From Macrostomum lignano (taxonomy: Eukaryota), in assembly GCA_002269645.1 (NCBI GenBank), contig NIVC01003090.1, forward strand, positions 1-64,000: a stretch of DNA of 64,000 nucleotides. The letters are read 5' to 3'. The notes beneath the pieces are model-generated. The model had not been told where the DNA came from, made no database searches, and saw only the letters and a list, made by a program, of their open reading frames with translations. Both the position numbers and the translations under genes were made by a program. Below are positions 6,146-63,249 of the stretch, in pieces (positions within the stretch are counted from its first letter, which is position 1; each line of letters begins with the position of its first letter).

Positions 6146-6859
<714 letters not shown>

Positions 6860-16254: not shown

Positions 16255-17788
16255 GGTAATGGCTAGAGTTCTGGCACCAGAACCCATTTTCTAGTGGCTA
16301 TGGATCCAGTAGACTTCTATAGGCAATTATCTACTAATGAAATCTTTGAATATTAGAAGTATTTTATTTAAATCTCATCATTTAATTTTGATCATATCTT
16401 GAACAAAATCTCCATATCAACTACCCAGGATGGAATTCTTGTATTTCTTAAGTCAAACGGAATTATGCAATTTTTTTATGGCGCACAAAATATTTTTTAT
16501 TGGTCGCATTTTTTATTTTGGTACTTAGCACGTCACAAAATAACAAAATAACAAAATAACAGACAATAATGAAAAATGAATTCTAAGAAAATGTAGTGAT
16601 TTGAATTTTCATCCAAATACATATGTTAGAGAATGTTACGAGTTTCTACTTTTTATATAATTTTTTCGAATTTTTACTTTTGTGCCTTATTTAGTTTTTA
16701 CTTTTTATTCTTTTTTTCTTCGTGATCTTAGCTAGTAGGGTTATCTTTTGCAAAATCCAATATCTCAAGCGCACTTTTGCATATATTAAGAATTAGCAAT
16801 TTTGTCTGAAATTCTGCGACACATTTTTTTCTGGATTTTTTGATGCAAAATCGCATTTTTTTCTCGCAATTGCATAATGCATTGTGATTTTTCTGCAAGA
16901 ATTCTATCCAGGTCAACTATCCATTAAAAAGTAAAATGTTTTTGCTATATTTATATCTATAAATTGCACTATTGAAATTGTGCTTGGCCTATTAGCTCTG
17001 TCTTTCTAGAATCTTAACTATTGGCCTTTGCCTAGTCATATTTCTTATGAGCTGCCACCAAAGTTGTCCTTCTATTTAATTAATGTACCTTTGCATGAAA
17101 ACTTATATTCTTATTATTAGTATTGTATCTGCTTTTCTATCTACTTTTACTAGTAGCATCTACTTATCTTATTGGTAGCATCTATATATATACTGTATTC
17201 TTTGGCCTGAGTGGTTTAATGGCACTGTCTACTTTATTTACTCCTATAAGTTTTCTCTCAGTCCTGGGCATTCCCTGGATCAGAAGGTCATGGCTTTATG
17301 CACTTTCCCTGCCTTGAGGTGATCTTTCTTACCATGAGGTGGTTTTTCTTGCCCTAAGGCATTTTACACCCTCTCTAAGGTTATTGCCCTAAGGAGATTC
17401 TTGCTTCTTAGCGGTCTTCTAGTAATAGTCCCAATTTGGGGTTTTATACTCTAAGAAATGAGTAAGTCAATTTGAACAACTGCTTATTATTATTATTAAA
17501 TTTGCTTGAAGTCAAATGACAATTTGAGAAGATGCCTTTCTTGGCCTGCTTCAGGGCTTCTATTTATTCTTACTTGTCTATATATTTAAAACAACAAACT
17601 TTAATTTTGTAGAATATTATTGGCACACACAACATTTAAACAAAGTTATTAATTTTTGGCAGAAATTCAAATACTATATTTTCTAAGAAATAGATTGTTT
17701 GAGTATATACTATACTATCTCAGAATATTACTGCTAGATGTATAGCTATTAGAAAATGGGTTTTAGTGCTGGAACTCTAGCTATTGCC
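16255..17788. mobile_element. Non-autonomous Mutator-like DNA element (~58-bp TIRs, 9-bp TSD)
   Basis: Left GGTAATGGCTAGAGTTCTGGCACCAGAACCCATTTTCTAG..., reverse complement of right GGCAATAGCTAGAGTTCCAGCACTAAAACCCATTTTCTAA.... Flanks CTTAAATAT (16246-16254) and CCTAAATAT (17789-17797). Superfamily is inferred from TSD length. Confidence 0.75.
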
Positions 17789-18376
17789 CCTAAATATATT
17801 CTATTTATAAGCCTAAAAAACTTGCATATTATTGACAAATTTTTGTAATCATGTAAAATCTTGACCTTGTACAATAAAAAAACTTAAAAGTTAGTATGAC
17901 TTTGTTTATTATATCCTTTGACTAAAGGTCCAATAAAATGGAAATGGTTTTGTGTCATTGCAATTAAACTTATTTGCATCTCATTTGTTAGCAAGATAGG
18001 AATAGCTAGCTAGGCTGTAGACTTTAACATTTAGGCTATAGACTAAGACTACAATACTAAAAGGACAGATCTTAGAGATTTAATATGTTTGAATTTTTTA
18101 TGAATTCTATGAAGCATCTTACATAGATTTAAATGTAAAATGTAAAAAGATTTATTAGAGATTTAGTATATACTAGAGCGTTATGGACATTCAAGCATAC
18201 AAACCTTAGAGATTTAGTATATTTAGATATATATATATATATATCTAAAAGAAAATATAGACTAGCAAGTAGACTACTTTGTAGAAAAAAAAACAATTTA
18301 TAATTTACAAAACCTATTAGGCAATTTATAGCCATATTTATTAGTTGACAATTTATAGCTATACCATTTCAACCAT

Positions 18377-18674
18377 CATACATGCGCAACAGTCGGCCGA
18401 GTCGGCCGATCCGGCCGACCAATTTGGCGGCCAATCAAGGAAGTCGCAAAAATGCCCACCCAAAAAATAACCTGAAGAGTAGTACTAAGTAGCTGACGAG
18501 GCATTTCAGCTTAATAAAACAGTCATAGTTACTCCTGCCGTTTACCCAAAGTTGCGTTAATTTTGCTTTCGGGTTTTTTTATATGTAAGTCGCATTTTTG
18601 GCCAAAAACTACGTCGCATTTTTGTTAAAACTAAGTCGCACGGCTGACCGAATTTTGGAGGTTGCACATGTATG
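18377..18674. mobile_element. 298-bp hAT-type MITE
   Basis: TIR CATACATGCGCAAC / GTTGCACATGTATG (1 mismatch); perfect 8-bp TSD TCAACCAT (18369-18376 and 18675-18682). Confidence 0.88.
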
Positions 18675-18992
18675 TCAACCATTTTACTTATACCCATTAG
18701 TTGATAATATGCAGTCATATCCATTAGCAAATTTATAGTTATATCCATTAGAAAGTTTATAGTCAAACATTGATAATTTGCAATATTATCTATAGATGCC
18801 TAAAATCACTTATAGACAATTAAAAATAGGCTTTCACCATAAGCATAAAAATCACCATTTGAAACAAGGCTCTATCATAAGCTCAAAAAGGTAGAAGCAA
18901 AAAAATCATGTAAAAAGTTTAATAACCATCATCACAAGCTTGATAAGTTCAAAAAGTTAAATTGTTGAAAACTTATTTAGCAACCATTATCA

Positions 18993-19923
18993 TGTTACGC
19001 TCCTTCCCAAGTTCTTGAAGATATTCCTAGAAATAGAACTCGTTGCTCCGGAAGTAGCTAGATAGCACAGTTGTATTACCTATCAATTTGCCTATAATTG
19101 AACCTAAAACGTTAGCCTTAACTTGGTAGGGTTTCTACCACCTTGGTGTGCAGACTCAATGCGTCAGCAGAGTTGTCTATCTGTCACCTGAAATAAAATA
19201 ACAAAATCGCTCGGAGCAAAGGCAAATCTGACAAATGTCTTAATAGTCAATTGACTTAGTAGAATGCTGCTCAAACCTGAAAACCTGAAATGAGAGAGGA
19301 GAGCTTGGAGGAGGCTTCACAAGTTAGCCACAATGCTCTGCAAGACAACGCAATAAAAGCGAGGGTCCGCAATGCTTGCAATGAACGCAATCTGGAAAAA
19401 AATGGCTCACAGATGCTCCATATTTATAGCTGAGTAGACCCCCAAAAGTCACATGAGTTTCATGTGCTAAGCGCGTGAAACTTCCTTATTTGGTCCTCAG
19501 AATCATGCGAGCAAGGTGTGATCTAAGGCCAACTTCCAAATAAGGCAAGCCTGTCACGCAGCAGTGGCGTGACTCAAGGTCAGTGGCCACGCACAGTGTG
19601 CGTGCACAGTCACGTGCTTTTCTGTGCTAAAAATAGAACTTAGGTGGATGAGTCATCCTGTTTACTCCCTCTAGGCACCCTTTACACTCTGCGCTGATAA
19701 TGAGTCATCCTGTTACAATTCCTCAGTGCAGGAGGGGAAGATATTGAGTGTGGCTGCTGTGCCCGCTCAAGCAATGAGTCATTGGGCAGTAAACACTTAA
19801 GCCCAGCACAGGGTAACTCTCTCACTAGATCAGGTAGACTGAGCTGCTGTGCAGTGGATCACAGCACTCTTAGGAACAGCTAGTGAATGCTGCTAAATAG
19901 CCAGTTAGCAGCCAGTCACTACA
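18993..19923 (-). mobile_element. 3' LTR (931 bp) of an LTR retrotransposon, copy A
   Basis: Minus strand begins TGTAGTG and ends CGTAACA; immediately preceded by polypurine tract GATGGGGAGAG (19924-19934); TATAAATA at 19428-19421; co-oriented ORFs upstream; homologous copy at ~44030-45085. Confidence 0.85.
19484..19781. promoter_or_regulatory. LTR U3 enhancer: two perfect CArG boxes and four perfect AP-1 sites
   Basis: CCTTATTTGG 19484-19493, CCAAATAAGG 19536-19545; TGACTCA 19570; TGAGTCA 19649, 19701, 19775. Motif presence only, no binding data. Confidence 0.6.
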
Positions 19924-22945: not shown

Positions 22946-25885
22946 TCAGGGGGACCCGTCGGTCTCGCCTGCAGCGCGGTCCTCCTCACCGACGGTGGGG
23001 AAGAAATCAGCTTGTCCGGTGTCCCTGAGGTACCGGGCGAGCAGCGGGATGCTCTCGGGCCTGCAAATGTCGGAGAGAACCGGGTTTGGCCCGAGGTGAG
23101 TAAGCCTGGCCCTGGTGAAAACCGGGCAGTGGCAGATAAAATGCTCGGCGTTTTCACTGCCTGAGCGGCAGAAGGGGCACCGCTCCTCGGGTACTTGGCC
23201 CTGAAGGAAGCGGTGGCGAGAGAAGCAGCCATGCCCGGAGAGGGCCATGCTAACTGCTCTGAGGTCTCTGCGGTTGAGCCTGAGGAGGGCTCTACGCAGG
23301 AGAGGAGAGGGACAGGGGACGGCAGCACGGGATTGCCTACAATTCCAGGTGTCGTGCCACCTGCGGAGATGCTTGGAGTCAGCCCAGCGCTTAACGCGGG
23401 AATTGATTACCGAGGCGGGGATGGGGGCACCCGGGCCCGGCCCCAATAGCGCGCCGGCGGAGCCAGCCTTGGCCAGCAGGTCAGCGCGCTCGTTGCCAAG
23501 GAAGCCGGCGTGGCCCGGGATCCATCTGAGCTCCACCTGGTTGCCTAGCGCAAGCCCGTTGAGCTGGGTGTTGCAGTCCAGGACGGACCTGGAGCTGGCG
23601 GTGCTGCGGCAGAGGGCCCGAAGGGCTGCTTGGCTGTCAGAGTGAAAAATAAATTTCCGGCCGCTAAGTTGCCTTCGGCGCAGCTCTGCCGCGCAGGAGC
23701 TGATGGCAAGCACCTCGCTCTGAAAAACACTAGAGTTGAGCCCAGTGTGCTGGGAGTAGCTCCACACCACTTCTCCCTTGAAGAAGACGCAAGCTCCGAA
23801 GCCTGAAAGACCATGCCTCATAGAGCCGTCAGTGTAACAGTGGACTTCAGAGTCGCTCCAGCTGTCACTCGCCTCGTGTCGAGGCTGAATGGTGACCTTA
23901 TACCTTTGGCTCAGGAGAAGGGTGGCTGGGATCGAGTCCGTGAGGATGTTGAGCCTGCCACACTCCTCGAGAGCCTTGAGGCAGAGGTCAGAGTGCGGGA
24001 TAAGCGACCGCTTCTTAAAGGCCCGCACTTTCTTGAAGGCCACCCCAGCATCCAGAAGACGCCGGGTGCTCTTCGCCGCCTCTCCTTTGATATAAATATC
24101 CAAAGGAGGGGCACAGAGGAAGGCATTCATGCCTTCAAAAGGAGTAGAGGGTGGAGCGCCCATAGTCATGCGGCAGGCTCTGCCCTGGATTTTGTAGAGA
24201 GCATCGAGGTTGCTCTTGACGCTCAGGCCGCTAGCCCACACGAGGCTGGCGTAACTGATCGAGGGGCGGATGATGGCAGTGTAAATCCACCACAGCTTCC
24301 TGGGGGTGAGCCCCCAGGTGGTGCCCACGGCGCGCCTGATCTGAGCCAGTACAGCCAGGGCTTTTTTGGCTTTAGTTTGAATGTGCGGAGTCCAGTTAAG
24401 CCTGTGGTCCAGAGTGAGGCCCAGGCAGCGGACCTGCTTCTCCATGGAAATATTCTTTCCATAGAGGGTGAGGGGCTTAATGGTCCAGAGCAGTTTGTTG
24501 GTAAACATGACTGCTGTGGTTTTCGACTCTGAGAGTCTAAGGCCACATTGGTCTGCCCAACGCTCCGCTCGTCCCAGAAAGCCCTGCAGAAGGTCTCTGA
24601 TGGTATCAACCGAGGGGCCCGCGCATATCGCGGTCACATCATCGGCATAGCCCACCTTGAGAATGGGGTCGTGGAGATCACTGCAAAGCAACTCATCCAT
24701 GACCATGTTCCAGAGAACGGGGGTGAGAACGCCGCCCTGGGGGCCCCCTTTCAGGACAGGCACCAAAAGAGAGCTGCCGCTCAGGTGGGCCACAACAGTG
24801 CGGTTTCGGATCATGAACATGATCCACCGGACAAGGTGAGGGTGCGTGGCCCTGGATTCCAGGGCTCTGCAAAAGGCCTCGAAGATGACGTTGTCGAAGG
24901 CCCCCTCAATGTCCAGGAAAAGCGAGAGGGCAAAGCCGCTGCCAAGAACGGCCCTCTCCAGGAAGTCAACAATGACATGGAGAGCACTCTCGGTTGACCT
25001 GCCCGCGCAGAAGGCGTGCTGGTTCTGCGAGAGTGGGAAGCGCTTCAGCTCGACCGAAAGTAGGCGCCAAAGCACCAGTCTCTCGAGGAGCTTGAGGCAG
25101 AAAGAAGTGAGGCTGATAGGCCTGAAGGCCTTCACCGATTGGTAGTCGCTCTTTCCAGGCTTGGGGATAAAGACCACCTGGGCCTCTCTCCATGCAACTG
25201 GTACATAGCCCAGCTCCATACAAGCTTGAAGGAGACGACAGAGCAGGTCCAGGAAGCGGTGGTTTTTCACCGCCTCGTGCAAGAACGCTGGGTAGATGCC
25301 GTCGGGCCCAGGCGCCTTGAACGGGTTAAAGGACCTTGCCGCTCTAATAATGCGGTCTTTGGTGATCAAAGACTTTGCTAGGCCTTGCCCTCCCACTGTG
25401 TGGTCGGGCGGGCCCTGCTGAGTCGGAGATTTAGGGAAAAAACTGTTGAGCATGAGCTCTAGAGTCTCTTCCGAACTCTCTGTGACCGAGCCGTCAGGTC
25501 TCTTCACAACAGAGAGTTTAGAAAAACGGTCATTAGTGAGTGCCTTAACCACGCGGGCTATGGGGCGAGAGCCCTCAAGCCCTTCGCAATATTGGCGCCA
25601 CTTGGCTGTCTTGGCCCTTCTGACTTGGCCCTTAAACTCGTGGATCGCACGGGTATAGGCCTCTCTGTCAGATGGGTCTTTGGTTTTGAGCGCTCGCCTT
25701 TGGAGGGTCCTGGCTCGGCGCCGAAGGGCCCCGAGCTCTGGGTTCCACCAGGGAGCAGATTTCTTGCCTTTATAGGCCTTTAGGGGGCAGGCTGCTTCAA
25801 AGGCAGTGGTGATCGCCCCGCCCAGGGAGGAGGCGAGATCGTCCACCACCTGGCAGTCAGAGAGGTCACTGGGGGGGGGGGTCAA
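22946..25885 (-). CDS. LINE ORF2, RT plus RNase H plus C-terminal Cys/His motif (979 aa stop-free part)
   Basis: KAPGPDGI, FIPKPGK, FRPISLTS, FLDIEGAFDN, GGPQGGVLTP, GYADD; RNase H YTDGS...SEVLAI...SDSQAAL...WIPGHAGFLGNERADLLAK; CPFC..ENAEHFICHC. Confidence 0.96.
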   Translation of the reverse strand: MTPPPSDLSDCQVVDDLASSLGGAITTAFEAACPLKAYKGKKSAPWWNPELGALRRRARTLQRRALKTKDPSDREAYTRAIHEFKGQVRRAKTAKWRQYCEGLEGSRPIARVVKALTNDRFSKLSVVKRPDGSVTESSEETLELMLNSFFPKSPTQQGPPDHTVGGQGLAKSLITKDRIIRAARSFNPFKAPGPDGIYPAFLHEAVKNHRFLDLLCRLLQACMELGYVPVAWREAQVVFIPKPGKSDYQSVKAFRPISLTSFCLKLLERLVLWRLLSVELKRFPLSQNQHAFCAGRSTESALHVIVDFLERAVLGSGFALSLFLDIEGAFDNVIFEAFCRALESRATHPHLVRWIMFMIRNRTVVAHLSGSSLLVPVLKGGPQGGVLTPVLWNMVMDELLCSDLHDPILKVGYADDVTAICAGPSVDTIRDLLQGFLGRAERWADQCGLRLSESKTTAVMFTNKLLWTIKPLTLYGKNISMEKQVRCLGLTLDHRLNWTPHIQTKAKKALAVLAQIRRAVGTTWGLTPRKLWWIYTAIIRPSISYASLVWASGLSVKSNLDALYKIQGRACRMTMGAPPSTPFEGMNAFLCAPPLDIYIKGEAAKSTRRLLDAGVAFKKVRAFKKRSLIPHSDLCLKALEECGRLNILTDSIPATLLLSQRYKVTIQPRHEASDSWSDSEVHCYTDGSMRHGLSGFGACVFFKGEVVWSYSQHTGLNSSVFQSEVLAISSCAAELRRRQLSGRKFIFHSDSQAALRALCRSTASSRSVLDCNTQLNGLALGNQVELRWIPGHAGFLGNERADLLAKAGSAGALLGPGPGAPIPASVINSRVKRWADSKHLRRWHDTWNCRQSRAAVPCPSPLLRRALLRLNRRDLRAVSMALSGHGCFSRHRFLQGQVPEERCPFCRSGSENAEHFICHCPVFTRARLTHLGPNPVLSDICRPESIPLLARYLRDTGQADFFPTVGEEDRAAGETDGSP

Positions 25886-26644: not shown

Positions 26645-28161
26645 TGCAGATCGGATGTTGCAGCCGCCAGGAGTTCCTCCTCCTCCTCGGCGCTCACCGG
26701 CTTCGGGTCGGGGTCGCCGGTGTCCATGGGCTCTTCTTCAGCAAAAGGCCCCTGATTGGCCGGAAGGCAGTAGGCAGCGTTCGCCGCCCTTTGCTCACCA
26801 TCCATGGGGTCCTCCGCCTCAGATTGGCCCAATGCCCTGGAGCAGCCAGCCGCCTGGGCAGGCGGGTCCGTCTCCAGTCGGCCCTGCCCCAAGGGGTTGG
26901 GCCCAGCTGGGACGTCCCCACCCTCCCTGGACGAACTGGTGCGCCTAGGCGTCCCGGCGACCTCTCGCCTCAGCTGGGAGATTTTGGCGGTACGGACTGC
27001 CTCAGCTGCACGCTGGTACAGGCCGCGCCGCTTGGTGCTGCGCGCCGGGCGTCAGTCGCCTCCGCCCTCAACAGCGCGTTCAGCTTTGCCCGCGCGGCCG
27101 TGCTGCCGGGCAGGGCGGTTTGCTTTGGCAGTCTGAGCAGAGGCTTGCACCTTGGCCCCGGCCGCCTCCGCATCCCGCCCGCCCTGCTCACTGCCACGGG
27201 GAGGGTCGGCCTCGTAGGAGCGGATGCGCAGCTTCCAAAGGCCGACGTTGATGAAGCTGCCATGTGGATAACGCCTCATCCAGGCATCCAACAGCCCCAG
27301 GATGGCTGTGAAGCCAGTGCCGTCGGTGCGCTTAAGGGTGTCATGCACCACTAGGCCCGCGGCGGGAAGCTCCCGGTTGACTGCTAGCAGTCCTTTCCGG
27401 AGCTCGTCAGCAGAGGTAACAACGCTCCTGGCCGGGACCCAGATTCGATGCCTCTTGGTCCGGGGGCGCTCGTCCTCTCTGCAGAAGGCTAGGTTGAGGT
27501 CCCAGCTCTGCTCGGGCAGCAGCTCAAGGAGCCGCCGACCCGAGTCAGCATCACTGGGCCAAATGAGAAGGCACGAGTCCCTCGTCGCATTCGAATGAAT
27601 GTTCAGAGGCGTGCCCTTCAGAGTTTGCTTCCACAGGAGGCCATCAACGGCACTTCTCACCTGCTTCAGCTGATCGGGAGACAGGCGCGCGTCCTTTCCC
27701 AGGATGACAACCGCCGGTTGCCTCTTTGCCGTATCAGCGTAGGAGGCCCGGGGGTCAGTGGAGCTTTCTTCAGGTGGGCTGTCCACCCTCCCGGCTGCAT
27801 CGGCCTCCCTATCCTGGGCAGGGGCTTCCGTGGGCTCGAGGCCCTCTTCCGCCACCGCCCCAGACTGGGAAGCTTCCGCTGCCGCGGGCCGTTGGCCCCT
27901 GGCACCGGTTTGGCTTCCACCCTCCTTGGCCCGCCTCGCCTTGTTAAGTCGACGGCGGGCAGCTCCAGAGGTGGTGCTGCGTTTCTTAGCAGCTGGAGTA
28001 GCAGGTGTCTTCTCGGAGGCACCGCTCAGAGTTGGCTCCACGGGTCTCGCCGAGGCGTCCCCGATGGTAGCAGGTGGTATGGCCAAGGAGTCCACGGCCC
28101 CAGCCGAGGCCGGAGGCACTGTGTCATCCACAGCCGGTTTGTTACTTTGGTTAGAAGCCAT
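26641..28161 (-). pseudogene. LINE ORF1 (~506 codons) with a single in-frame TGA at 27054-27052
   Basis: The 369-aa ORF continues in the same frame without further stops to 26641 (checked codon by codon); SYADTAK motif; directly upstream of ORF2. Confidence 0.8.
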
Positions 28162-32727: not shown

Positions 32728-33900
32728 ATGCTTCTCCGCATGTCGTCCGCCCTGTGCGACAGGAGTGCAGGACCGCGTCCTTACCGACAGCAGCAGGATC
32801 AGGAGAAGCAACAAGAAGCTGCTTCGTCTGGCGCAGGACCCAGTGGCAGCGGTAGCGGAGAAAGTAGCACCGGCTATCGCGATATCACCGTCACCCTGCA
32901 CAATGTTGTTAGTTGTTTCTCCACCCAGTGCCATCTGAACCTGAAAAAGATTGCCCTAGACGGCCTGGACGTTGAGTACAAGCCGGAGACCTACATGGTA
33001 ACTATGCGACTGCGCAAGCCCTACTGCGTAGCTAGCATTCGTTCTAGCGGCAAAATATTTGTAGCCGGCAGCGCCAGCGAGCTGGACTCGCGTCGCGGAG
33101 CTCGCCGAATAGCCCGGCGAATCCAAAAGATTGGTTTCCCCTGTCGGTTCTCGAATTTCCGCATTACTAACGTGCACGCCACCTGCGAGCTGCCGTTTCT
33201 AGTCAGGCTGCCTGGCATCGCTGACGAGCTGCCGCAGATGGCCGACTACGAGCCCGAGCTACACCCGGCGCTGAACTTGCGCTTTAAAGATATTCGCGTA
33301 TTAGCTAAGGTATTCGCCACTGGCAGCGTTGTGTTCACTGGGCCTTGTACGCGCAGCATTGATGAGGCTGTTGTGCGACTCTATCCAATCTGCTGCCGGC
33401 ACAAAAGCACTAATAAGAGCGACATTGAGCGTCGCGACTGCGTTGCTTCGGTTCGCGGCCGGGCGGCGCCTCCAGCACGTCCGCCTGCTAGCGGAGTCGG
33501 CGTCAGCGTCGGCGGCAGCGGCGGAGCGACAATCGGTCGACCGTCGGCTGCTAAGCGTCGTCGGCTGGTTGCTGCTAATGCCGGCGTCGGCGCAGCTTCG
33601 TCATCGTCGGCATCGGCGTCAACTGGCGGCAGTGTCGCCGGCCGGGCCTCCGCCGCCGCCAAGAGACGCCGGCGTCAGCAACAGTCCGATGACGTCTTCG
33701 CCGATTTGAATCTTGGCGAAGAGGACCGGCAGGTGCTTCGCCTGCTGCTGGCCGACGGTAAGCCGGCTAAGAAGCGCGGCCGAACTGCCGCTGCTGGTCG
33801 AGCTGCTTCAGCCGGCGGCGGCTCCTCGCTGCTGTCCGACCTCGAGGACAACGACGACTTCGGGTCAATGTCTGACAGCAGCAGTTCGGACGATTTGTGA
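32728..33900 (+). CDS. TBPL1: TBP-related factor, TRF2/TLF (TBPL1)-like, intronless, with long low-complexity C-terminal extension
   Basis: NVVSCFSTQCHLNLKKIALDG..VEY..MVTMRLRKPYCVASIRSSGKI..ARRIARRIQKIGFPCRFSNFRITNV..YEPELHP..KVFATGSV matches the TRF2-type bipartite TBP core. Start may be 32728 or 32740. Confidence 0.88.
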   Translation: MLLRMSSALCDRSAGPRPYRQQQDQEKQQEAASSGAGPSGSGSGESSTGYRDITVTLHNVVSCFSTQCHLNLKKIALDGLDVEYKPETYMVTMRLRKPYCVASIRSSGKIFVAGSASELDSRRGARRIARRIQKIGFPCRFSNFRITNVHATCELPFLVRLPGIADELPQMADYEPELHPALNLRFKDIRVLAKVFATGSVVFTGPCTRSIDEAVVRLYPICCRHKSTNKSDIERRDCVASVRGRAAPPARPPASGVGVSVGGSGGATIGRPSAAKRRRLVAANAGVGAASSSSASASTGGSVAGRASAAAKRRRRQQQSDDVFADLNLGEEDRQVLRLLLADGKPAKKRGRTAAAGRAASAGGGSSLLSDLEDNDDFGSMSDSSSSDDL

Positions 33901-35696
33901 CACTTGACAGGGGCTTGGCTTTGGATGGGGTGTACCATTGATTGACAAGTCTTCAGTCAGTTAGATGAAAGAACTAAGCGATAGATACACATAGAATACA
34001 TTAGTCCGTTCATTTTGGTTCGTTCTTAACAGTCTCCGTTGTTTACCTTTAAAGTCGAAGATCTGTTTTTTTTAAAGAAACGTCTGACAAAAGTCAGAAG
34101 CAATAACAAAGAGCAGTCTCTCCTGCGTTTGTTTGTATCTGTCTATGCTTTGTTCCTGCTGTGCCCAATACGAATTAGAATTGAAAATATTTTGTTGCAT
34201 TTTCACACCTTATAGCTGCTCTCGTTTGTTCTCGATCCCCCACCTACCCTTTCCAGACAAACTCAATAAATTTGTAGAACTATTCATAAAAAAGCTTTAT
34301 TTTTTATTTCAGTTACCAGTTTTTTTAAGCTTTGGTCTTAGTTACTTACAGTTGGTATTAAATTGGTGTTCAATAGGAGGTCGCCATCAAAAACTCGAAA
34401 AATCATAACGGGCTATTTCCGGTTTGTCATATTTCGGGTTTCTGATGCCCCCCCCCCCTCAGTAGGCCTAATTAAAGGCACAGCTTGATAAAAGTAAAAA
34501 AGCCTGCCTATTGAGATCAACACACTATACTAGTGATTTAACTGCTAGCGTAATGATAGATTCGCTTTCCTTTACGTATATCCGAGAGGCAAGTCGCGTT
34601 TGCATTTTTGTCTGATAAACCTCTGTTTTATCGCCTCCTACGAGTATATCTATCACCCCCTGCTCTCTATGTATCGAAATCGGTTGACTAAATCGCGTTG
34701 TTAATAGAAAAACTTTTTTGCCTGTCTATCAACAGATTTTCGTCAACACTAAAGCAAAAAAATGCCAACAGCATTAATTCAGTAACTTCGCTATATTGCG
34801 TTTTCATTTTTATCCAAAAATCAATTCGTACTCGTCTTAATTAGATAGCTTTCAGTCATAAATATGCACACAATTGCCATTATTAAGGTAAGGTACAACT
34901 AATGGTGCTCACTGTTAATCTGCATTAATTATAGTTTGTCAGCGGTTTGAAAAAAAATTAATTGTCAGACTAGTCAGTTTTCTAAGTGCAATGGCGGTAG
35001 TGTGAAAAGAATCTGGGTCTTATGGTTCATCTGATGTCGAAATTTCAATAAAAAGTACAACCTATAAGTTTATACACGTACTGTTTTATTAAGCCTGTCC
35101 TAAGTTTTGTATCCTGGTTGCTATCATTCTATAATATAGTATGTAGAAACTTCCGTTCCACAAAGAAATGTACTTGCAAACTGTTTCCTTACATAATCGG
35201 ATATTCGTGTCCAGTGTTTTATTTTCTCCAGCTATGAATTAACTTTCAAATTACAAGCCTTAACTGATTAAGAGATTAAACAATGCAGTAAGTATTAATA
35301 ATAAGTCCCAAGCAATGCGAATCCAGTATCGTATGGTTCGGTATTCGGCGGAACCCAGATACTCATTTTGCTTTGAGTTACTTTGCCTGTTGAAAATAAA
35401 AGACATCCAAGCGTCTTTTTCGCTTTAGACATTGTTTTTGCTAAAATAATAAAAAAATCTTGTTAGATTGGCTGTCTTTTTGTACTTTTTAGTAGGATTG
35501 AAATGTAGTTTAATAGGATTCTAGTGCTTAAGTACTTAGATAAGTCTTTTGGTTACAAATTTAAAAAAGTCGCAATATAATAGGGTTTCTTTGTTTTCAG
35601 TGAAACAACAAAACAATAACTTTTGGTTGTGCCACGTAACTGTCAAAGCCTGTTAATTATTCAGCAGCTCAGGTTATAGCGATCATTCTCCTCAAT

Positions 35697-37951
35697 CTAC
35701 CTAGGCTTGACACAGGTGTCGTTAACACGCTCATATCCGTCAGGACAACGGGTGACACACTTGACCACAGTCTTTATCTTGCAGATGCACTCTGAAAGTT
35801 CAAGAAGTAGTCGGTTTCAAACACTTGTACGTTCCAAATTTGCTCTTAAAAAGTATGCAAAGTGCATACATTACTGATTGGAAATGTTTGTCCTTTTCAT
35901 ACTTGCCTGGCTTCCACTTTTTTCTTAAATGTTTCTCGCTCGATGGCATCGACGTAAAGGTAGTTTCGCCTTTGGACGCGTGACCGATGTAGTTCAGTAC
36001 CTTGTTTGGCATGGAATAAGGTTATGATAAGGTTATGGTTATGACTGTGGCTCTATGTTTATGTCTAAGGAATTTTGGACACGTAATGACTCACGTATTT
36101 GAAATGGCGCCTGTTCCGCAATCGCAGCACTCGGCCTCCGGTCTGTCTAGCTAAGAATTCGAACTCGCGTCGGTACCGCCTGCCGCACATTCTGCCAACC
36201 TTTACAGCAAACAGACGAATCTTCTTAGAGCGCAGGTAGCGAGCCACAGCGTATTTGAGTCGTGCATCCTTTGCCGAGGCGTCGGTCACCACGAAGAGCA
36301 CCGAGCGGGGTCTGGCGAGTCTGGCAGCGTCCAGGATGCCGCGCATAGCGAATTCCGGACAGTCGCCACCCCGTCTGGCCCTCACGCGTTTAAGGAATCT
36401 GAGTATGGTGTAGGCAGACCGGGACCTGATGACTTTGCGCCTGTAGGGGTCGTTGAATGTCCCGATAACGTAGTCCTTGAATCGACGGTTGGCTTTTACA
36501 ATGCGCTTGATGTTGGTCTTGACAGCTCTGATCTCGCGCCACATAGAGCCCGTGTTGTCGATGGTGAATGCTAGGGACCCGACGACGCGTGGCGGTGGCT
36601 TGGTCTGGTCGGTTCCATTGCTGCACTTGCACACGCGAACTGTCTCTTCCAACTTGTAGTAGTCGGCTGGACAGCCTGTATGAAGTAGTATATAGTTTTT
36701 CTCCTTATCACCTGAATTTACTCTTTTCTCGTATTTGTCCCACGTACCTTTCGTTTTATCCTTTTCACACTTTGTTATAGTGCGCCACTTGCAGCAGCCT
36801 GAAATGGACATGTTTTCAATTTTTAAGTATTAAATGTATGCTTTTTATGGCTTGCACGCACGCCATTGAGCGTATGATAGACTCGGAAGGCACTTTTTCC
36901 TTTGTATATTTGCGGAGGCGGTTCTGGCATTATGGTCCTTGTTAGTGACTGAACAAGCACTTTACTTTCTTACGTGGTCTCAGTCGACGAAGCCGCGCAC
37001 CGCTGCTAGGCATAGAGTTGAACGCCACTTTACCATACACGGCTTTTGTAATGAACCGCATAAGCTGCAATCAGAGACAGATATGACCAGATCTTTAAAA
37101 ATACGAAGAGTATAACATTCAATTATATTGTGAAATTTCGATGGTTTTATTAATTACTGTTTGTTTTGTCTTAATAAAAGCCAATCAATAGTTTCGAGAG
37201 GTATTGATAAACTCACATAACGGAAGTTCACTCGGCGTCTGAACCGCAGCACTCGGCCTCCAGTCTGTCTGGCCAAGAATTCGAACTCGCGTCGGTACCG
37301 CCTGCCGCACATTCTGCCAACCTTTACAGCAAACAGACGAATCTTCTTAGAGCGCAGGTAGCGAGCCACAGCGTATTTGAGTCGTGCATCCTTTGCCGAG
37401 GCGTCGGTCACCACGAAGAGCACCGAGCGGGGTCTGGCGAGTCTGGCAGCGTCCAGGATGCCGCGCATAGCGAATTCCGGACAGTCGCCACCCCGTCTGG
37501 CCCTCACGCGTTTAAGGAATCTGAGTATGGTGTAGGCAGACCGGGACCTGATGACTTTGCGCCTGTATGGGTCGTTGAATGTTCCGATGACGTAGTCCTT
37601 GAATCGACGGTTGGCTTTTACAATGCGCTTGATGTTGGTCTTGACAGCTCTGATCTCGCGCCACATAGAGCCCGTGTCGTCGATGGTGAATGCCAGGGAC
37701 CCGCGTCGGCGAACGATGTGGCACTTAGAACTGCATATGAATTTTTTTACGCATACCTTCTTGTAACCAGATGGGCACTCGGCTGTTAAAACGACGTGAT
37801 ACAGATGTCATAATGATAATGATAAATTGTCATATACGAGTAATGAGCATACATTTATATTATAAGTAATTTATTTTGACTTGCCGGCCAGCACAGTGCC
37901 GATGCTTATTGCGGCGCACAATACCAGAGGGATCGCAAATGATGGCTTCAT
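35697..37951 (-). CDS. Secreted cationic protein with two tandem hemicentin/VWA7-type vWA domains and Cys-rich linkers (~538 aa); exons 37951-37885, 37782-37217, 37064-36974, 36798-36095, 36000-35907, 35791-35697
   Basis: Signal peptide MKPSFAIPLVLCAAISIGTVLA; MIDAS-type DDTGS/DNTGS, GGDCPE, TDASAKD. All exon phases match (1,0,1,0,1); total 1617 nt = 539 codons. Exons 3 and 5 are homologous (..FNSMPSS.. / ..FTSMPSS..). A possible extra 36-nt in-frame intron lies at 36711-36676. Confidence 0.85.
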
Positions 37952-39633
37952 TTTCTTCTAGTATGGTGTAAGGAATCTAGTATAGACAGCAGATCAAAGT
38001 CTTTGTGGTGGATGGGGGCAATCTTTGGAGGTTATATGCATGTTGCATAGCAATTATGCATACATTTCTGTGTTTATGATGAATTTGCTAGCCAAATATT
38101 GTCCAAGCTAATGCCCTGTCAAGTTGCGGCAAATGTTCAACTGTCTTCTTCTACTCGTATGAGTAGAAGTGCTGTATCTAAAGCAGCTGATTTTTTTACA
38201 AACGTGCTTCTTGGACTACTGTATAGAATCTACCGCAATTTTAATCTAGTGTGCAAATGTTTACTCAACAACGAGAGTCGAAATTGCTGCAGCCTGGATG
38301 CCGCTATTCTACAGCAACAAGCTTGTTTGTTAACCATTGAGCAACTTGCGTGACCATCTCGTTATTTGCACAAGCTATAGTGCTTGTCCGCTCGTCGACG
38401 ACACGTGCCACGTGAAGAGATGTTTTGATGATGCAGAGAGTTGTGATTATAACCTGCAGTCAGGCACTTACTTCATCTTAACTACATACGAGCGTATGTA
38501 TGGTATTCACATTTTTTTATGTTTGTACATGTATATAATAGTATCAAGGACAAGCAGTAACTTCTATAGTGGTCCTTGAATAGCATCGGGGGCATGGGCC
38601 GGCCCGGTTCGTCTCGTTTGCTAGTTTGCTGCTGAGAGATTAAAACTATTGCCTCCAGCATTAAATATGCATTCACATGCTAATTAAGCCTACATGTACA
38701 CCTTGTTGGAAGTTCTAATGCTTACTACCGAGGTACATCGATCGCGCTATCTTGGAACCGGTCATTTGTTTTTTTCTGGTGCTTTCCGAGTCTATCAAAC
38801 GCTCAATCGCACTGGTCCATCTTTTTCCTCCCTCCATGCAATGCACGTATACATATAAATCCCACCCCCATATTTGTGCCAAACACGCGTTAGAGTATAG
38901 CTTAGAATTTGCGTCTCGGATTCGCTAAAATTTCATGCAGAAGTATTTTTGAAATGAATATTGATATACATGTACAGTACATACTTCCTGTGGGTCATTC
39001 ATTTTTATTTCCCCCCCCCATTTCCAAATATGAGGATTTAGATTTATGACTCACTTACAATATTTTTTATTTAAAAATTAATAAATCTGCAGTTCTGGCG
39101 AATTAATGGCAAAAAGGTAGCTACTCCGGAACAAAAAGTGCACAAATTCTGTTTTTTGTTACTTAGGCGTGAGGAAATGTATCATCAACTTCTAAGGACA
39201 TCGACAATGAAAAGATAGTAAAGTCTTTTTAGCGTCTTGCACAGTAAGAATTACAAAGTAAGAATGCTAATAATTAATGGAGCTTCTTTAAGTTTTGTTT
39301 TGTTACTTACAAGAGATACTTTTAAAAAGTCTAACTGACGATCATTTTTTTAAAGATTTGTATGAATTATCATCGATCTCTATTTATTTATTTATTTATT
39401 ACTACAAGTATTTAACAGTCAGATTGCCTTGGTAATACATTTGGTCTTTTACCAAATAGACTAGGCCTACATAGAATATCTGGCTTATCGGGTCTTGCTA
39501 TGAAGTAGATTAGAATGTATTTCAATATTGCAGTTGTATTGTATATAATCCTTAACCTTGAAATATGGCCATGGGTCTATATTATTTATAAGGCTAGAGT
39601 CGAAATGAAGTGTTATTTGTTTCTCATCATAGG

Positions 39634-47025: not shown

Positions 47026-49100
47026 ATGCCGACTCCGCACAATAGCATGTCAGCCACCGGTTCAAGCGACGAACTGTGCGCTCAGCACGGCGACCAGCCC
47101 TTCTCAAACTGTTGGCGATTTCATGCCGAGAATCCCGAGGACTGCTGCGACGACCTCACGCCGGGCCCGTCGCCGTCTGGTGGCGAGGACAGATCCCGGT
47201 CGGTGTCGCCCTACTTGCCCGCCAGCGGCCCCGACCAGCGGATCGACGGCGCCGCCGACCAGCCGCCGCCGAAGAAGAAGTCGCGCGGAAAGCAGAAAAT
47301 TAAAATTGAATTCATACAGGATAAGAATAGGCGCTTTACTACGTTTTCGAAGCGTAAGACTGGACTGATGAAGAAGGCGTACGAGCTGGCCTCTCTAACC
47401 GGTGCGCAATCTAAAGCTGCGTCACACTGATCTTTTTTACAATATAAATATCAACCCTACTTATCGATAATAAAAAATTCTCCAGAGACAATCCCAACTG
47501 CAATAAATCTCAAGAATTATCCCCATAAAAATGGTACCTAGGCCAAGAAGCCTCCCAGAGTCGTTGCAAATGGCATAGGTAAAAAGGGAAAGAATTGAGT
47601 CTTAACGAGTCTTAAAACAACGAAATGTCACAGTTCAGGTCGCCCAAGAGTCGCCTTATACTCTGGGGCTGTAGAGTCAGGTTCAAAGTGCATTTGCGTC
47701 GCTTGATTTAGCGGCGTTCTCCAGTCGCTAAAAAGTCGCAAAAGAAGCGCTTTATTGCGTCACTTCTGAGACGCTCTGGGCGTGTTACAGAGTCAGAGTT
47801 ACAGTTACGCAACAAACACTCGGTATAGCCTATGGAACTCTAATTGCACTCTAACTAGCCTACTGAGTTAGTAGAAAGTTTAGCGCTAACACAACGATTA
47901 ATAAATGACTTTCTTCGAGACTCTTACGATTCTACAAGTCACGTGACGCGCTTGTGACGCAACAGTCCCCCCCCAGAGTCGCTAGAGTCACCAGAGTTGT
48001 TTGCAACGACTTTTCAGCAATTCGACCATTACATAATGCCAGGAGCAGTTTCAATCAAATCCTAATAATGCTCTCCTGCATTCCCTGCAGGCGCCCACGT
48101 GCTCCTATTGGTCGCCTCAGAGACCGGCCACGTGTACACCTACACTACAGAGAAGCTGAACAACATGGTGCAATCCAACAATGGCAAGGCTCTGATCCAA
48201 GCCTGCCTCAGCTCGGAGAAGTCGCCAGACGGAGGAGGCAGTGGCGGCGGCATGATGCCCTCACCGGGCGAGGCTGCTTCCCCTGTCGGAGCCGGAAGCG
48301 GTGCCCCCGCGGCTGCTATGCCAGCGGAGCCCCCGCCGCCACCGCCGCCGCCGCCGGCTCAGCTTCCATTTCAGCAGCAGGATCAGGCGTCTGTCTCGCC
48401 TGTGCAGCACCATCAGCAGCAGCACCTTCAGCATCACATGCAGCCACCGCCGCCGCCCCCGCAGCATCCGCTGGCTCAACAGCAGCAACAAGCTCAGCCT
48501 TCTGTGCCTCAGCATCACCAGCAGCATCATCATCATCATCAGCAGCTTCATCATCAGCATCTTCATCATCACCAGCAGCCCGAGCAGCATCCACAGCGAC
48601 AGCCGCCGCAGCAGCATCAGCAGCAGAGCTCGGAATTCCCTATGCCAGTAGTCTCCGTGAGCTCTGTGACCACAGTGAAGCCCGAGATTCCTCTGCCATT
48701 GCTCAGCCACCAGGGCCTCAGCGACCTGCTGTCGCCCGGCGGTCGCGCCGCCGCCGCCGCTGCCGCCGCAGCCGGCAGCTCGCTATCAGACCGGAAGAGC
48801 CACATACCAGCCTCGCTGGACCTGAGCAATCTCAGCAATTTGGCCATGGCCGCCGGCTCTGCTGCCACGCCAACCTCCGCGACATTCTCGCCGGCGCCCG
48901 GCTCCGCCCCGATCCTGCAGATACCGCAGTCGGCGTTCACTTCGACCGAGTTTAATCTGGACTCGCCGAATCTGTTCAGCTTAGGCTACGTGCCCGTCCG
49001 CGGCCCGGACAGCGTCATCTTCCTGCCCATCTCCGTCAATTCTATACCCAACCATCAGGACGCCGCGCCCAACTCTGTGGCCGCCGATCGCAACGCGTAA
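47026..49100 (+). CDS. SRF: SRF-type MADS-box transcription factor (461 aa); exons 47026-47401 and 48091-49100
   Basis: RGKQKIKIEFIQDKNRRFTTFSKRKTGLMKKAYELASLTG|AHVLLLVASETGHVYTYTTEKL..GKALIQACL; phase-1 intron G|GTGCGC...CCCTGCAG|GC; Q/H/P-rich C-terminus. Confidence 0.95.
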
Positions 49101-49230
49101 GATAGAGAGAGAGACAGAGAGAGAGGATTTAACAATAAAACTACTAACAGTCATTGCTGACCCCGTCACTCATTCAATAACGCTTATGCGGATTCATGCT
49201 TTCCCGCTTCACTCTGTTAACTGCCCTTTC

Positions 49231-51668
49231 ACACTGTTGAGAGTGACATTTCACACTATTGAGAGTGACATTTCGCACTGTTGGGAGTGACATTTCACTC
49301 CAGAGAGTAACATTTCACACTGTTGAGGTTGACACTGACATTTCACACTGTTGAGAGTGACATTTCACACTGTTGAGAGTGACATTTCACACTGTTGAGA
49401 GTGACATTTCACACTGTTGAGAGTGACATTTCACACTGTTGAGAGTGACATTTCACACTGTTCAGAGTGACATTTCACTCCAGTGAGTAACATTTCACAC
49501 TGTTGAGGTTGACACTGACATTTCACACTGTTCAGAGTGACATTTCACACTGTTAAGAGGGACATTTCACACTGTTGAGAGTGACATTTCACACTGTTGA
49601 GAGTGACATTTCACACTGTTGAGAGTAACATTTCACACTGTTGAGAGTGACATTTCACACTGTTGAGAGTGACATTTCACACTGTTGAGAGTGACATTTC
49701 ACACTGTTCAGAGTGACATTTCACACTGTTGAGAGTGATATTTCACACTATTGAGAGTGACATTTCACACTGTTGAGAGGGACATTTCACACTGTTGAGA
49801 GGGACATTTCACACTGTTGAGAGTGACATTTCACACTATTGAGAGTGACATTTCGCACTGTTGGGAGTGACATTTCACTCCAGAGAGTAACATTTCACAC
49901 TGTTGAGGTTGACACTGACATTTCACACTGTTGAGGTTGACACTGACATTTCACACTGTTCAGAGTGACATTTCACTCCAGTGAGTAACATTTCACACTG
50001 TTCAGAGTGACATTTCACACTGTTGAGAGGGACATTTCACACTGTTGAGAGTGACATTTCACACTGTTGAGAGTGACATTTCGCACTGTTGTGAGTGACA
50101 TTTCACTCCAGTGAGTAACATTTCACACTGTTGAGGTTGACACTGACATTTCACACTGTTCAGAGTGACATTTCACACTGTTGAGAGGGACATTTCACAC
50201 TATTGAGAGTGACATTTCACACTGTTGAGAGTGACATTTCACACTGTTGAGAGTGACATTTCACACTGTTGAGAGTAACATTTCACACTGTTGAGAGTGA
50301 CATTTCACACTGTTGAGAGTGACATTTCACACTATTGAGAGTGACATTTCGCACTGTTGGGAGTGACATTTCACTCCAGAGAGTAACATTTCACACTGTT
50401 GAGGTTGACACTGACATTTCACACTGTTGAGAGTGACATTTCACACTGTTGAGAGTGACATTTCACACTGTTGAGAGTGACATTTCACACTGTTGAGAGT
50501 GACATTTCACACTATTGAGAGTGACATTTCGCACTGTTGGGAGTGACATTTCACTCCAGAGAGTAACATTTCACACTGTTGAGGTTGACACTGACATTTC
50601 ACACTGTTGAGAGTGACATTTCACACTGTTGAGAGTGACATTTCACACTGTTGAGAGTGACATTTCACACTGTTCAGAGTGACATTTCACTCCAGTGAGT
50701 AACATTTCACACTGTTCAGAGTGACATTTCACACTGTTGAGAGGGACATTTCACACTGTTGAGAGTGACATTTCACACTGTTGAGAGTGACATTTCACAC
50801 TGTTGTGAGTGACTTTTCACTCCAGTGAGTAACATTTCACACTGTTGAGGTTGACACTGACATTTCACACTGTTCAGAGTGACATTTCACACTGTTGAGA
50901 GGGACATTTCACACTATTGAGAGTGACATTTCACACTGTTGAGAGTGACATTTCACACTGTTGAGAGTGACATTTCACACTGTTGAGAGTAACATTTCAC
51001 ACTGTTGAGAGTAACATTTCACACTGTTGAGAGTGACATTTCACACTGTTCAGAGTGACATTTCACACTGTTGAGAGTGACATTTCACACTATTGAGAGT
51101 GACATTTCACACTGTTGAGAGTAACATTTCACACTGTTGAGAGTGACATTTCACACTGTTCAGAGTGACATTTCACACTGTTGAGAGTGACATTTCACAC
51201 TATTGAGAGTGACATTTCACACTGTTGAGAGTGACATTTCACACTGTTGGGAGTGACATTTCACTCCAGAGAGTAACATTTCACACTGTTGAGGTTGACA
51301 CTGACATTTCACACTGTTGAGAGTGACATTTCACACTGTTGAGAGTGACATTTCACACTGTTGAGAGTGACATTTCACACTGTTGAGAGTGACATTTCAC
51401 ACTGTTCAGAGTGACATTTCACACTGTTGAGAGTGATATTTCACACTATTGAGAGTGACATTTCACACTATTGTGAGTGACATTTCACACTGTTGAGAGT
51501 GACATTTCACACTGTTGAGAGTGACATTTCACACTATTGAGAGTGACATTTCACACTGTTGAGAGTGACATTTCACACTGTTGAAAGCCACATTTCACTC
51601 CATTGAGTAACATTTCACACTGTTGAGAGTGACATTTCACACTGTTGAGAGTGACATTTCACACTGTT
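49231..51668. repeat. 22-bp minisatellite (ACACTGTTGAGAGTGACATTTC), ~110 units, with 20-bp and 28-bp variant units
   Basis: Direct reading; starts about 130 bp after the SRF stop codon. Confidence 0.97.
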
Positions 51669-62642: not shown

Positions 62643-63249
62643 ACTGCTCGGATAAAATTCTCTGCTTTGCCAGTGCCGCCGCTCTGTACATCTTGAATAT
62701 TCTACAGTATAAAACGACATTTCTAATGCTAAGAAAAAAACTGTTTTTCCTTCGGTTAATTTCTTATATAAATGATTTGTCAGGGCTTTGTGGAATAGCT
62801 TAATATGGTCTCTGCTTGTGCTCGTGTCTCTTTTCCATGTACCTTAATTACTGTTATTGTTATTATTGTCTATTAATATGATTTGCCTAATGTTAAATTT
62901 TCCTTGCTACCTGTACGAACGACTGCAGGCTGATCCGTTCCAGTTGTTTTTTTTTAGAAAACGAGACTCAAATATGAAATAGCAACAGCCATTGGATATA
63001 GCGTGTTCTGCATTAGCGAGTATTGATTACCATGGATTCTATATAGTTGATTTACCATTCTGCTTGCTAAACTGTAACTGTTTAATGTATGCGTGAAGTT
63101 CAATAAAATGTGCGCATAAGTTTCCTTTGTCCATTCTTTTGGAGTTCGCTGTCGCCTTGTTAAATGGAAGATTGACTTTGAGTGTCTTGTTACCCCTCTC
63201 AGTGCTATTGCATTGCATTACCCCTCTCAGTACTCGCTGAGGCTGTCCT

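Follow-up and report, generated by a model that had tools for sequence, protein, structure and literature searches.

The flatworm Macrostomum lignano is the main molecular model of reversible underwater adhesion, and the current model of its glue has two players, the cationic protein Mlig-ap1 and the glycoprotein Mlig-ap2. According to Wunderer et al. 2019 (PMC6410801), adhesion in this animal is charge-based, heparin blocking attachment and polycations blocking release, and Mlig-ap1 is a secreted, extremely K/R-rich cohesive protein of the adhesive organs for which a charge-based role has been proposed. In another extracorporeal holdfast, the mussel byssus, the secreted protein PTMP1 (PDB 4cn8, 4cn9, 4cnb) is a short chain of two consecutive von Willebrand factor type A (vWA) domains, with a metal-ion-dependent adhesion site (MIDAS) according to the PDB title. 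Planarian rhabdite mucus, for its part, is rich in sulfated glycosaminoglycans (GAGs) (PMC5450325). Here we describe a gene of M. lignano, hereafter the vWA gene, whose predicted product carries an extreme positive charge on two tandem vWA domains. It lies on the minus strand at 37951-35697 of a stretch of 64,000 nucleotides (the window: positions 1 to 64,000 of contig NIVC01003090.1, assembly GCA_002269645.1). Its product is a vWA matrix protein at the cationisation extreme of a lineage-specific family, incompletely annotated and unstudied, and offers a good starting point for work on bioadhesion and mucus in flatworms.

Gene structure

A three-frame reading of 35600-38000 places the start codon ATG at 37951 and the TAG stop at 35699-35697. 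Two long open reading frames (ORFs), 37154-37666 and 36065-36811, contain near-identical vWA cores, and on their flanks lie five short stretches of coding sequence bounded by proper splice signals; joined, these parts give a coding sequence of 1581 nt and 526 aa in seven exons, every phase being consistent. The earlier note on this DNA, made from the letters alone, had already joined the two frames into one phase-consistent gene at 35697-37951, and this stands. Its count of 6 exons and 538 aa is reproduced exactly if the segment 36711-36676 is read through, which adds DKEKNYILLHTG; otherwise the gene has 7 exons and a product of 526 aa. The gene is composed as follows, a slash marking the end of an exon.

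37951-37885, minus strand: exon 1, start codon and signal peptide MKPSFAIPLVLCAAISIGTVLA; ends in phase 1
37884-37783, minus strand: intron 1, 102 nt, GC-AG, donor G/GCAAGT; the sole in-frame junction, with position and phase as in the paralogs
37782-37217, minus strand: exon 2, CPSGY cysteine hairpin and vWA domain 1; donor GTGAGT
37681-37667, 37492-37475 and 37408-37388: exon 2 motifs DDTGS, GGDCPE and TDASAKD, respectively
37064-36974, minus strand: exon 3, last helix of vWA domain 1 and FNSMPSS linker; ends in phase 1, donor GTAAGA
36798-36712, minus strand: exon 4, CCKWRTITKC hairpin and K-rich flexible linker; missing from the public model P0001
36711-36676, minus strand: candidate intron 4 or read-through coding segment, 36 nt, GT..AG, in frame, stop-free, 31% GC
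36675-36095, minus strand: exon 5, CPADYY hairpin and vWA domain 2; donor GTGAGT
36559-36545, 36370-36353 and 36286-36266: exon 5 motifs DNTGS, GGDCPE and TDASAKD, respectively
36000-35907, minus strand: exon 6, last helix of vWA domain 2 and FTSMPSS linker
35906-35792, minus strand: intron 6, 115 nt, GC-AG, donor G/GCAAGT; contig L003 is colinear here (...SWKP/ECICK)
35791-35697, minus strand: exon 7, CICKIKTVVKC hairpin, CPDGY hairpin and TAG stop

Donors of the six candidate introns are GT in four cases (GTGAGT twice, GTAAGA and GTGATA) and GC in two, after exons 1 and 6, and at both GC sites no GT alternative preserves the frame. The full G/GCAAGT consensus is typical of functional GC-AG introns. 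GC content ranges from 41 to 57% in exons and from 26 to 39% in introns. The 41 introns that we mapped in three paralog genes are without exception GT-AG, the shortest measuring 78 nt. The 36-nt segment 36711-36676 coincides with an intron position conserved in these paralogs and might be either a mini-intron or an exonised remnant; we leave the 526- and 538-aa products as alternatives. Since the segment is in frame and stop-free, the protein remains intact with either splicing outcome.

The model is colinear through all its junctions with P0006 (BOX15_Mlig025149g1, 512 aa), a M. lignano paralog whose NCBI annotation we take to be transcript-based. The loci of P0006 and of two further paralogs, P0004 and P0111, carry introns at the same positions and in the same phases as the vWA gene, those around exon 3 among them. 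Junctions are also covered by an mRNA-like contig, L003 (Logan run SRR28338165), of 1073 nt, with an uninterrupted 273-aa ORF (P0110) that is 77-78% identical to the vWA gene in nucleotides and 80% in protein. Its alignment splits into blocks at the exon boundaries of the vWA gene, and it reads across the exon 1/2, 5/6 and 6/7 junctions, both GC-donor ones included (exon 1/2: ...VTA/ECPSGY). P0110 comprises one unit only, in which the N-terminus of unit 1 is fused to the C-terminus of unit 2; possibly it is a true single-unit orthologue, or the result of unit loss by recombination between homogenised cores, or a repeat-collapsed assembly path. Two separate genes at this locus can be dismissed: the ATG of the downstream ORF (36811) would give a product beginning MSISGCCKW... 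and devoid of a signal peptide, and the paralogs carry both units in one product. We are highly confident that the gene and its architecture are real and regard them as secure.

The closest database match is A0A1I8GUE1 (P0001) from M. lignano, 383 aa long and 98% identical in the multiple alignment. It begins within exon 2, omits exon 4 and runs into intron 5, and consequently has neither the signal peptide nor exon 4 nor the C-terminal exons. This pattern of start, skip and run-on identifies P0001 as a truncated prediction of the vWA locus, and proteomic or transcriptomic searches relying on it may under-detect the protein. The description of the gene as hidden, given in the earlier note, therefore applies to the full-length products, which are absent from the protein collection searched, but not to this truncated form, which was already public. 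Negative database results should be read as weak, because the word-index protein search missed P0110 despite its 80% identity; the same search with the inter-unit region (residues 199-322, 124 aa) gave no matches, not even P0001, and is uninformative. A tblastn search of the 64-kb window returned this locus only and no second copy of the gene.

Protein architecture and predicted fold

The N-terminus, judged by eye, is signal-peptide-like, and similar hydrophobic leaders begin P0006, P0004, P0111 and the homologue P0110. It is followed by two units, in each of which a vWA domain has a CPxGY..C hairpin on its N-terminal side and, on its C-terminal side, an F(N/T)SMPSS linker and then a CxC...C hairpin; a flexible K-rich linker connects the two units and a CPDGY..C hairpin closes the chain. 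The elements that the earlier note had listed are all present: the signal-peptide-like N-terminus, CPSGY, CPADYY, CPDGY, DDTGS/DNTGS, GGDCPE twice, TDASAKD twice, FNSMPSS/FTSMPSS, CCKWRTITKC and CICKIKTVVKC. Its assignment of the domains to the hemicentin/VWA7 subtype agrees with Pfam, where PF25106 (VWA_4, hemicentin/VWA7-type) matches in two copies with E = 6.6e-64 and 215 bits against a cut-off of 27. Apart from vWA-family entries, Pfam has no match in the 526-aa product. Searched alone against Pfam (E <= 10), the linker hairpins gave no credible domain, the best being Antifungal_prot (E = 0.037) and atypical EGF (E = 0.16); they may resemble an EGF/furin-like half-repeat.

An AlphaFold2 model based on a 70-sequence alignment reaches a mean predicted local distance difference test (pLDDT) of 82.8 and a predicted TM-score (pTM) of 0.48. 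When averaged over 10-residue blocks, the vWA cores are mostly above 90 (exon 2 blocks mostly 83-98), and they display the alternating strands and helices of the Rossmann-like alpha/beta vWA fold. Beta-hairpins are predicted for the linkers; the stretch between the units (residues 259-270) is disordered (pLDDT <50), and residues 1-22 are unstructured, also with pLDDT <50. A Foldseek search of the PDB with this model gave 146 matches at E <= 0.001; of the 50 best, nearly every one is a structure of a vWA or integrin I-domain. The first is the tandem-vWA protein PTMP1 of the mussel byssus, with E = 3.6e-14 and both domains aligned, and single vWA and integrin I-domains come next; the comparison with PTMP1, made in the earlier note, is thereby upheld as the best solved-structure match. 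Sequence searches of the PDB, with the single protein and with the 70-sequence profile, gave no matches. The full protein has 20 cysteines and the mature chain 19. A disulfide probably links the invariant residues C123 and C181 and, the mature count being odd, one cysteine is likely unpaired.

Charge, conservation and gene conversion

The whole protein contains 84 R, 50 K, 21 D and 17 E; in its mature form it has a pI of ~11.1 and a net charge of ~+95. The earlier figure of 41 R/K against 10 D/E in each 140-aa core is about right, our counts being 38 against 10-11 for the core and 43 against 9 for the richest 140-aa segment. For comparison of charge, we extracted 268 VWA_4 domains from all retrieved homologues. 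The 236 domains of proteins not listed as Macrostomum have a mean net charge of -4.0 per 100 aa (standard deviation, sd, 3.4), whereas the two domains of the vWA gene reach +19.5 and +18.4, about 6-7 sd above the family mean. P0145, the single highly cationic exception in the set not listed as Macrostomum, is in fact from M. lignano, and every VWA_4 domain above +9 belongs to a named M. lignano protein or to a contig resembling such proteins.

In the 70-sequence VWA_4 alignment, G120, D122, C123, P124, E125, D149, A150, D154, C181 and G198 are invariant, and D57, T59, G60, S61 and M62 are conserved in at least 90%. The vWA gene keeps all of these invariant and near-invariant residues, with the motifs intact in both domains. 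Domain 1 contains 12 acidic residues, seven of them at invariant or near-invariant positions (D57, D93, D122, E125, D133, D149, D154); an eighth, D58, is inside the D-x-T-x-S motif. A charge 6-7 sd above the mean, together with acidic residues retained in domain 1 mostly at conserved or motif positions, makes the charge look selected and not incidental; surface charge was judged from secondary-structure classes only. The MIDAS-type residues are D57-x-T59-x-S61, D122, which replaces the usual Thr, and D149, and may coordinate a metal. By analogy with known vWA domains, the D-x-T-x-S, GGDCPE and TDA..D motifs would sit on the MIDAS face. Finally, the comparison with L003/P0110 gives dN = 0.168, dS = 1.49 and dN/dS = 0.11, which indicates long-term purifying selection on the vWA gene.

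The two vWA cores contain an internal repeat, as follows.

37703-37242, minus strand: 462-bp block, copy A, within exon 2
36581-36120, minus strand: 462-bp block, copy B, within exon 5

The copies are 98% identical, with 9 mismatches and ~290 bp free of any difference. Three of the nine differences are silent, and none introduces a stop or a frameshift. Around the block, hairpins, linkers, introns and exon ends do not align, and by reading the linker exons of the two units are strongly diverged at the protein level. Identity confined to the cores, between flanks that cannot be aligned, points to gene conversion between the two vWA cores; the simplest reading would be an old duplication of the unit followed by recent conversion.

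The Macrostomum VWA_4 family

At least six M. lignano loci carry the unit made of CPxGY hairpin, VWA_4 domain, linker and CxC hairpin. The vWA gene has the features that unite the polycationic members, namely a signal peptide, at least one CPxG(Y/F)-VWA_4-F..P-CxC unit and the shared intron positions. The architecture, which the earlier note did not recognise, is thus found elsewhere in the same genome, including in the 512-aa twin P0006 and in the 4112-aa P0111. Domain charge in the flatworm VWA_4 family spans values of -8 to +36 per 185 aa, the vWA gene being at the extreme. The relatives can be arranged in the following way.

Cationic, two units: the vWA gene, P0006/P0007 and P0009/P0113
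Near-neutral, three units: P0002, P0004 and P0005 (one locus; P0004 is BOX15_Mlig027525g6), and P0003/P0008
vWA-LCCL-vWA, a cochlin-like arrangement: P0112 (A0A1I8JEL7)
SUEL-lectin and VWA_4 with hyper-K/R sequence: P0247 (A0A1I8JAD7)
More than 15 CPxGY hairpin repeats, then VWA_4: P0145 (BOX15_Mlig000911g8)
NIVC01000294.1 (L004), gene 3001-19244: P0111 (BOX15_Mlig022224g1), 4112 aa, signal peptide, two units, VWD

Among these, P0111 includes ~2800 aa of K/R- and Cys-rich sequence with roughly +50 net charges per 200 aa. By domain content it is not Mlig-ap1, which we take to be 5407 aa long, and it appears uncharacterised. None of the large relatives P0111, P0247, P0119 and P0145 contains SRKPRRKNRKSRKP, the Mlig-ap1 antigen peptide.

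All name-bearing relatives that are multi-unit or strongly cationic come from M. lignano. Name-bearing matches from other organisms (animals, fungi and bacteria) show single-domain similarity only, of the VWA7-like or hemicentin-like kind; an acidic two-domain chitin-binding protein of the midge Clunio is found among the non-Macrostomum VWA_4 matches. On this sequence evidence, the vWA gene belongs to a Macrostomum-specific expansion, in agreement with the lineage-specific origin proposed earlier, and the homologue searches returned no close orthologues of ordinary charge and known function across animals.

Proteome, expression and literature records

Three of the paralogs, P0004, P0006 and P0009, are listed in the supplementary mass-spectrometry data of Wunderer et al. 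2019 (PMC6410801, Datasets S1-S3). Their pI is given there as 10.5-11.8 and their only label is 'von Willebrand factor type A / similar to hemicentin'; the paper does not discuss them. Peptides SSIQAVVTATSGIFDK and NSVLVLFTDAAAK match P0004; AIRPNGGGDcPEYSLSGVR, NYVLATFSDPYK and SVLFLFTDASAK match P0006; and DAHLQSSVASLLSSK, NHIQSIIR and NAHQALAFLR match P0009. Peptides of the three proteins stand in the sheets 'footprints_Trypsin_intact_1' and '_2'. P0006 and P0009 are moreover represented by peptides from amputated tails (coverage up to 32%) and from peanut agglutinin (PNA) pull-downs. Peptides that would be unique to the vWA protein include VAFNSMPSSGAR, YVLNYIGHASK, GETTFTSMPSSEK and VNSGCPADYYK.

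The positional RNA-seq study, in the candidate lists consulted (PMC4490696), has one collagen-like vWA transcript, unrelated to the family. No vWA or hemicentin-like entry was found in the supplements searched of the seminal-fluid in situ hybridisation (ISH) screen (PMC5977470). Full-text literature searches with identifiers of the genes, proteins and transcripts and of the sequencing run did not find the family proteins named, those combining Macrostomum with hemicentin, VWA7 or vWA found nothing relevant, and a usable Macrostomum marker table from a single-cell atlas was not found in the literature.

Neighbouring features of the window

Other genes and repeats of the window are given below, with domain names and E-values where a match was found.

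6143-6739, minus strand: exons for an RRM protein, ELAV-like by eye
9219-11153, plus strand: intact 644-aa ORF of a piggyBac-type transposase (DDE_Tnp_1_7, E = 3e-70, and a zinc finger)
22946-25885, minus strand: open ORF of 979 aa with reverse transcriptase and RNase H; probably a non-LTR retrotransposon
27052-28161, minus strand: 369-aa ORF with no Pfam match, upstream of the 979-aa reverse-transcriptase ORF
32728-33900, plus strand: two TBP repeats (PF00352, E = 2e-37) in an uninterrupted ORF of 390 aa whose long tails are rich in Ala/Ser/Gly
47026-49100, plus strand: exons of an SRF-type MADS-box gene
61251-62642, plus strand: exons of a forkhead gene
3836-4088: tandem array, 16 bp x16
49227-51668: tandem array, 22 bp x110
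57201-58058: tandem array, 31 bp x28
63243-63995: tandem array, 11/73 bp x70/x10

Some 1.8 kb separate the gene for the TBP-like factor from the vWA gene, on the 3' side of the latter. By eye, the coding regions of the MADS-box and forkhead genes are very GC-rich and have many poly-Q and poly-A tracts. The large tandem arrays generate spurious long ORFs.

Proposed function and alternatives

We tentatively propose, at somewhat less than an even chance, that the vWA gene encodes a secreted, bivalent, polyanion-binding and metal-dependent crosslinker of a surface-deposited secretion. The protein would be exported into an extracellular secretion, the likeliest destination being the mucus or adhesive material left on the substrate, where the three paralogs have been detected by mass spectrometry. 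These paralog peptides lend indirect support to the polyanion-binding gland secretion suggested in the earlier note. The protein would serve there as a condenser and, being bivalent, as a crosslinker: a metal ion in each vWA pocket would mediate the binding of a partner protein through one of its acidic side chains, polyanionic glycans (for example sulfated GAGs or mucin-type glycoproteins) would be bound by the arginine-rich surface, and the odd cysteine of the mature chain may permit a covalent intermolecular link. We also count in favour of this function that relatives of the protein form part of giant secreted proteins rich in K/R and Cys, which carry VWD, SUEL-lectin or LCCL domains. A mode of working like that of a PTMP1-type or coacervate-type matrix crosslinker is suggested by analogy. 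A wider and rather doubtful extension is that the Macrostomum polycationic VWA_4 proteins together form an unrecognised structural class of flatworm surface secretions (footprint and/or rhabdite-type mucus), which would condense sulfated glycans in a coacervate-like manner, the network being locked by metal-dependent vWA-ligand bonds and by the odd free cysteine.

Several observations weigh against the proposed crosslinker. Beside the 41 paralog introns, the two GC donors and the 36-nt intron stand out as atypical. Expression of the gene is presumed. Neither the exact 526-aa nor the exact 538-aa product is in a collection of 15 billion protein sequences, and homology searches did not return a transcript-based NCBI BOX15 protein for the locus. 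Nine tryptic peptides of the vWA gene were not found in the searched portions of the PMC6410801 tables. The footprint sheets of that study also list tubulin, an apoB-like protein and other cellular proteins, so that presence in a footprint is no proof of secretion into the glue. Lastly, the paralog transcript IDs were not found in the positional RNA-seq candidate lists, as far as these were covered (PMC4490696).

The gene might instead contribute to a reproductive secretion, associated with prostate and seminal fluid, cement glands or eggshell, in which the polycation would bind glycans of sperm, egg coat or antrum. The earlier note had named such a role among its options. Flatworm reproductive glands typically produce small secreted proteins of restricted lineage (Weber et al. 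2018, PMC5977470), and amputated tails, where paralog peptides are abundant, contain the prostate and cement glands. However, the paralogs are also recovered from footprints of intact worms and in PNA pull-down eluates, and the searched seminal-fluid supplements and positional RNA-seq lists contain neither a vWA/hemicentin-like entry, for the former, nor the family, for the latter. The tyrosine content is ordinary by our own count, unlike that of an eggshell precursor. Moreover, reproductive proteins usually evolve fast, and a dN/dS of 0.11 is low for them. We consider a reproductive role improbable.

Smaller still is the chance that we give to a defensive or antimicrobial polycation, placed on the epidermis or in rhabdite-type granules, whose charge would disrupt microbial envelopes or deter predators. 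The extreme positive charge with its arginine bias (84 R against 50 K), the secretion signal, the disulfide-stabilised fold and the presence of paralogs in surface-deposited material would all suit such a role. Yet the protein consists of two folded vWA domains of 20 kDa, in which a ligand-binding motif is conserved, and so differs from amphipathic antimicrobial peptides and proteins; conservation of the MIDAS face favours a specific protein ligand, and the relatives are embedded in giant mucin- or glue-like proteins containing VWD or lectin domains.

The unusual splice sites, the missing peptides and the lack of a transcript-based NCBI model or a full-length protein on record might also be explained by a silent or decaying duplicate, whose frame would be open only through recent gene conversion, splicing or expression being lost. 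Against this, all seven exons are open and in phase, the GC donors carry their full consensus at conserved intron positions, and neither outcome at the 36-nt segment breaks the protein. Invariant residues are intact in both domains, and the conversion tract differs at nine positions, three of them silent, with no stops or frameshifts. The negative searches that would favour silence are, as said above, weak. A dead gene is in our view quite unlikely. Equally hard to sustain is an ordinary extracellular matrix (ECM) or basement-membrane protein with a hemicentin-like vWA role in cell-surface targeting or matrix assembly, its charge being a by-product: the domain family is shared with hemicentin and VWA7, and near-neutral three-domain paralogs do exist (P0004, P0003), but the Ig, TSP1, G2F, EGF and fibulin modules of hemicentin and the VWA7-associated PF25107, PF23560 and PF23619 are all lacking, the charge is about 6-7 sd above the family mean, with domain 1 acidic residues mostly at conserved or motif positions, and paralogs were recovered from material left on glass and not from tissue alone.

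If the polycationic VWA_4 proteins do form a structural class of surface secretions, the charge-based model of attachment and release has players beyond Mlig-ap1 and Mlig-ap2. A folded, strongly cationic and bivalent vWA family would supply candidate crosslinkers and biomimetic building blocks, and some of its members are already in the footprint proteome, unremarked. The evolution of the vWA locus is also unusual, with the acidic residues of domain 1 mostly kept at conserved or binding-motif positions and two copies held 98% identical by probable gene conversion.

Comparison with known systems

The vertebrate matrix adaptors matrilins and cochlin are short secreted proteins in which two vWA domains are separated by small Cys-rich modules. 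Their vWA domains are of the collagen type (PF00092), and they have true EGF domains, a coiled coil and ordinary charge. The vWA gene resembles them in its two-vWA layout, and the paralog P0112 even has the order vWA-LCCL-vWA, but the linkers of the vWA gene match no Pfam domain. PTMP1, which binds collagen, shares with the vWA gene the short secreted chain and the two consecutive domains. The likeness is one of general plan: identity is ~12%, there is no match to the PDB at the sequence level, and the two proteins belong to different vWA subfamilies. With a TM-score of 0.27-0.36 and an rmsd of ~13 A, the geometry between the domains is not common to both.

With Mlig-ap1, the common points are the species, secretion and the extreme richness in K and R. 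Mlig-ap1, however, consists of low-complexity KR regions together with C-lectin, vWD, C8, TIL and EGF domains, and has no vWA (PMC6410801, PMC8621496), whereas the vWA gene has none of these domains and its charge resides on a folded domain. Identity with Mlig-ap1 is rejected.

Hemicentin and VWA7 are the relatives by domain family, since the PF25106 domain with its D.TGS, GGDCPE and TDA..D motifs and its cysteine pair is kept in the vWA gene. Hemicentin (fibulin-6) has an N-terminal vWA domain followed by an array of Ig, TSP1, G2F, EGF and fibulin modules; the vWA gene has no such array and carries the domain in tandem. In VWA7, as in most non-flatworm matches, VWA_4 is flanked by PF25107, PF23560 and PF23619, which are absent from the product of the vWA gene. 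Closest of all are proteins of M. lignano itself. Some of these paralogs, none with a described function, differ by having three units or by the addition of LCCL, SUEL-lectin or VWD domains and thousands of K/R/Cys-rich residues. P0006, by contrast, with its two units, a pI of 11.4 and 46% identity, is a near twin of the vWA gene in design.

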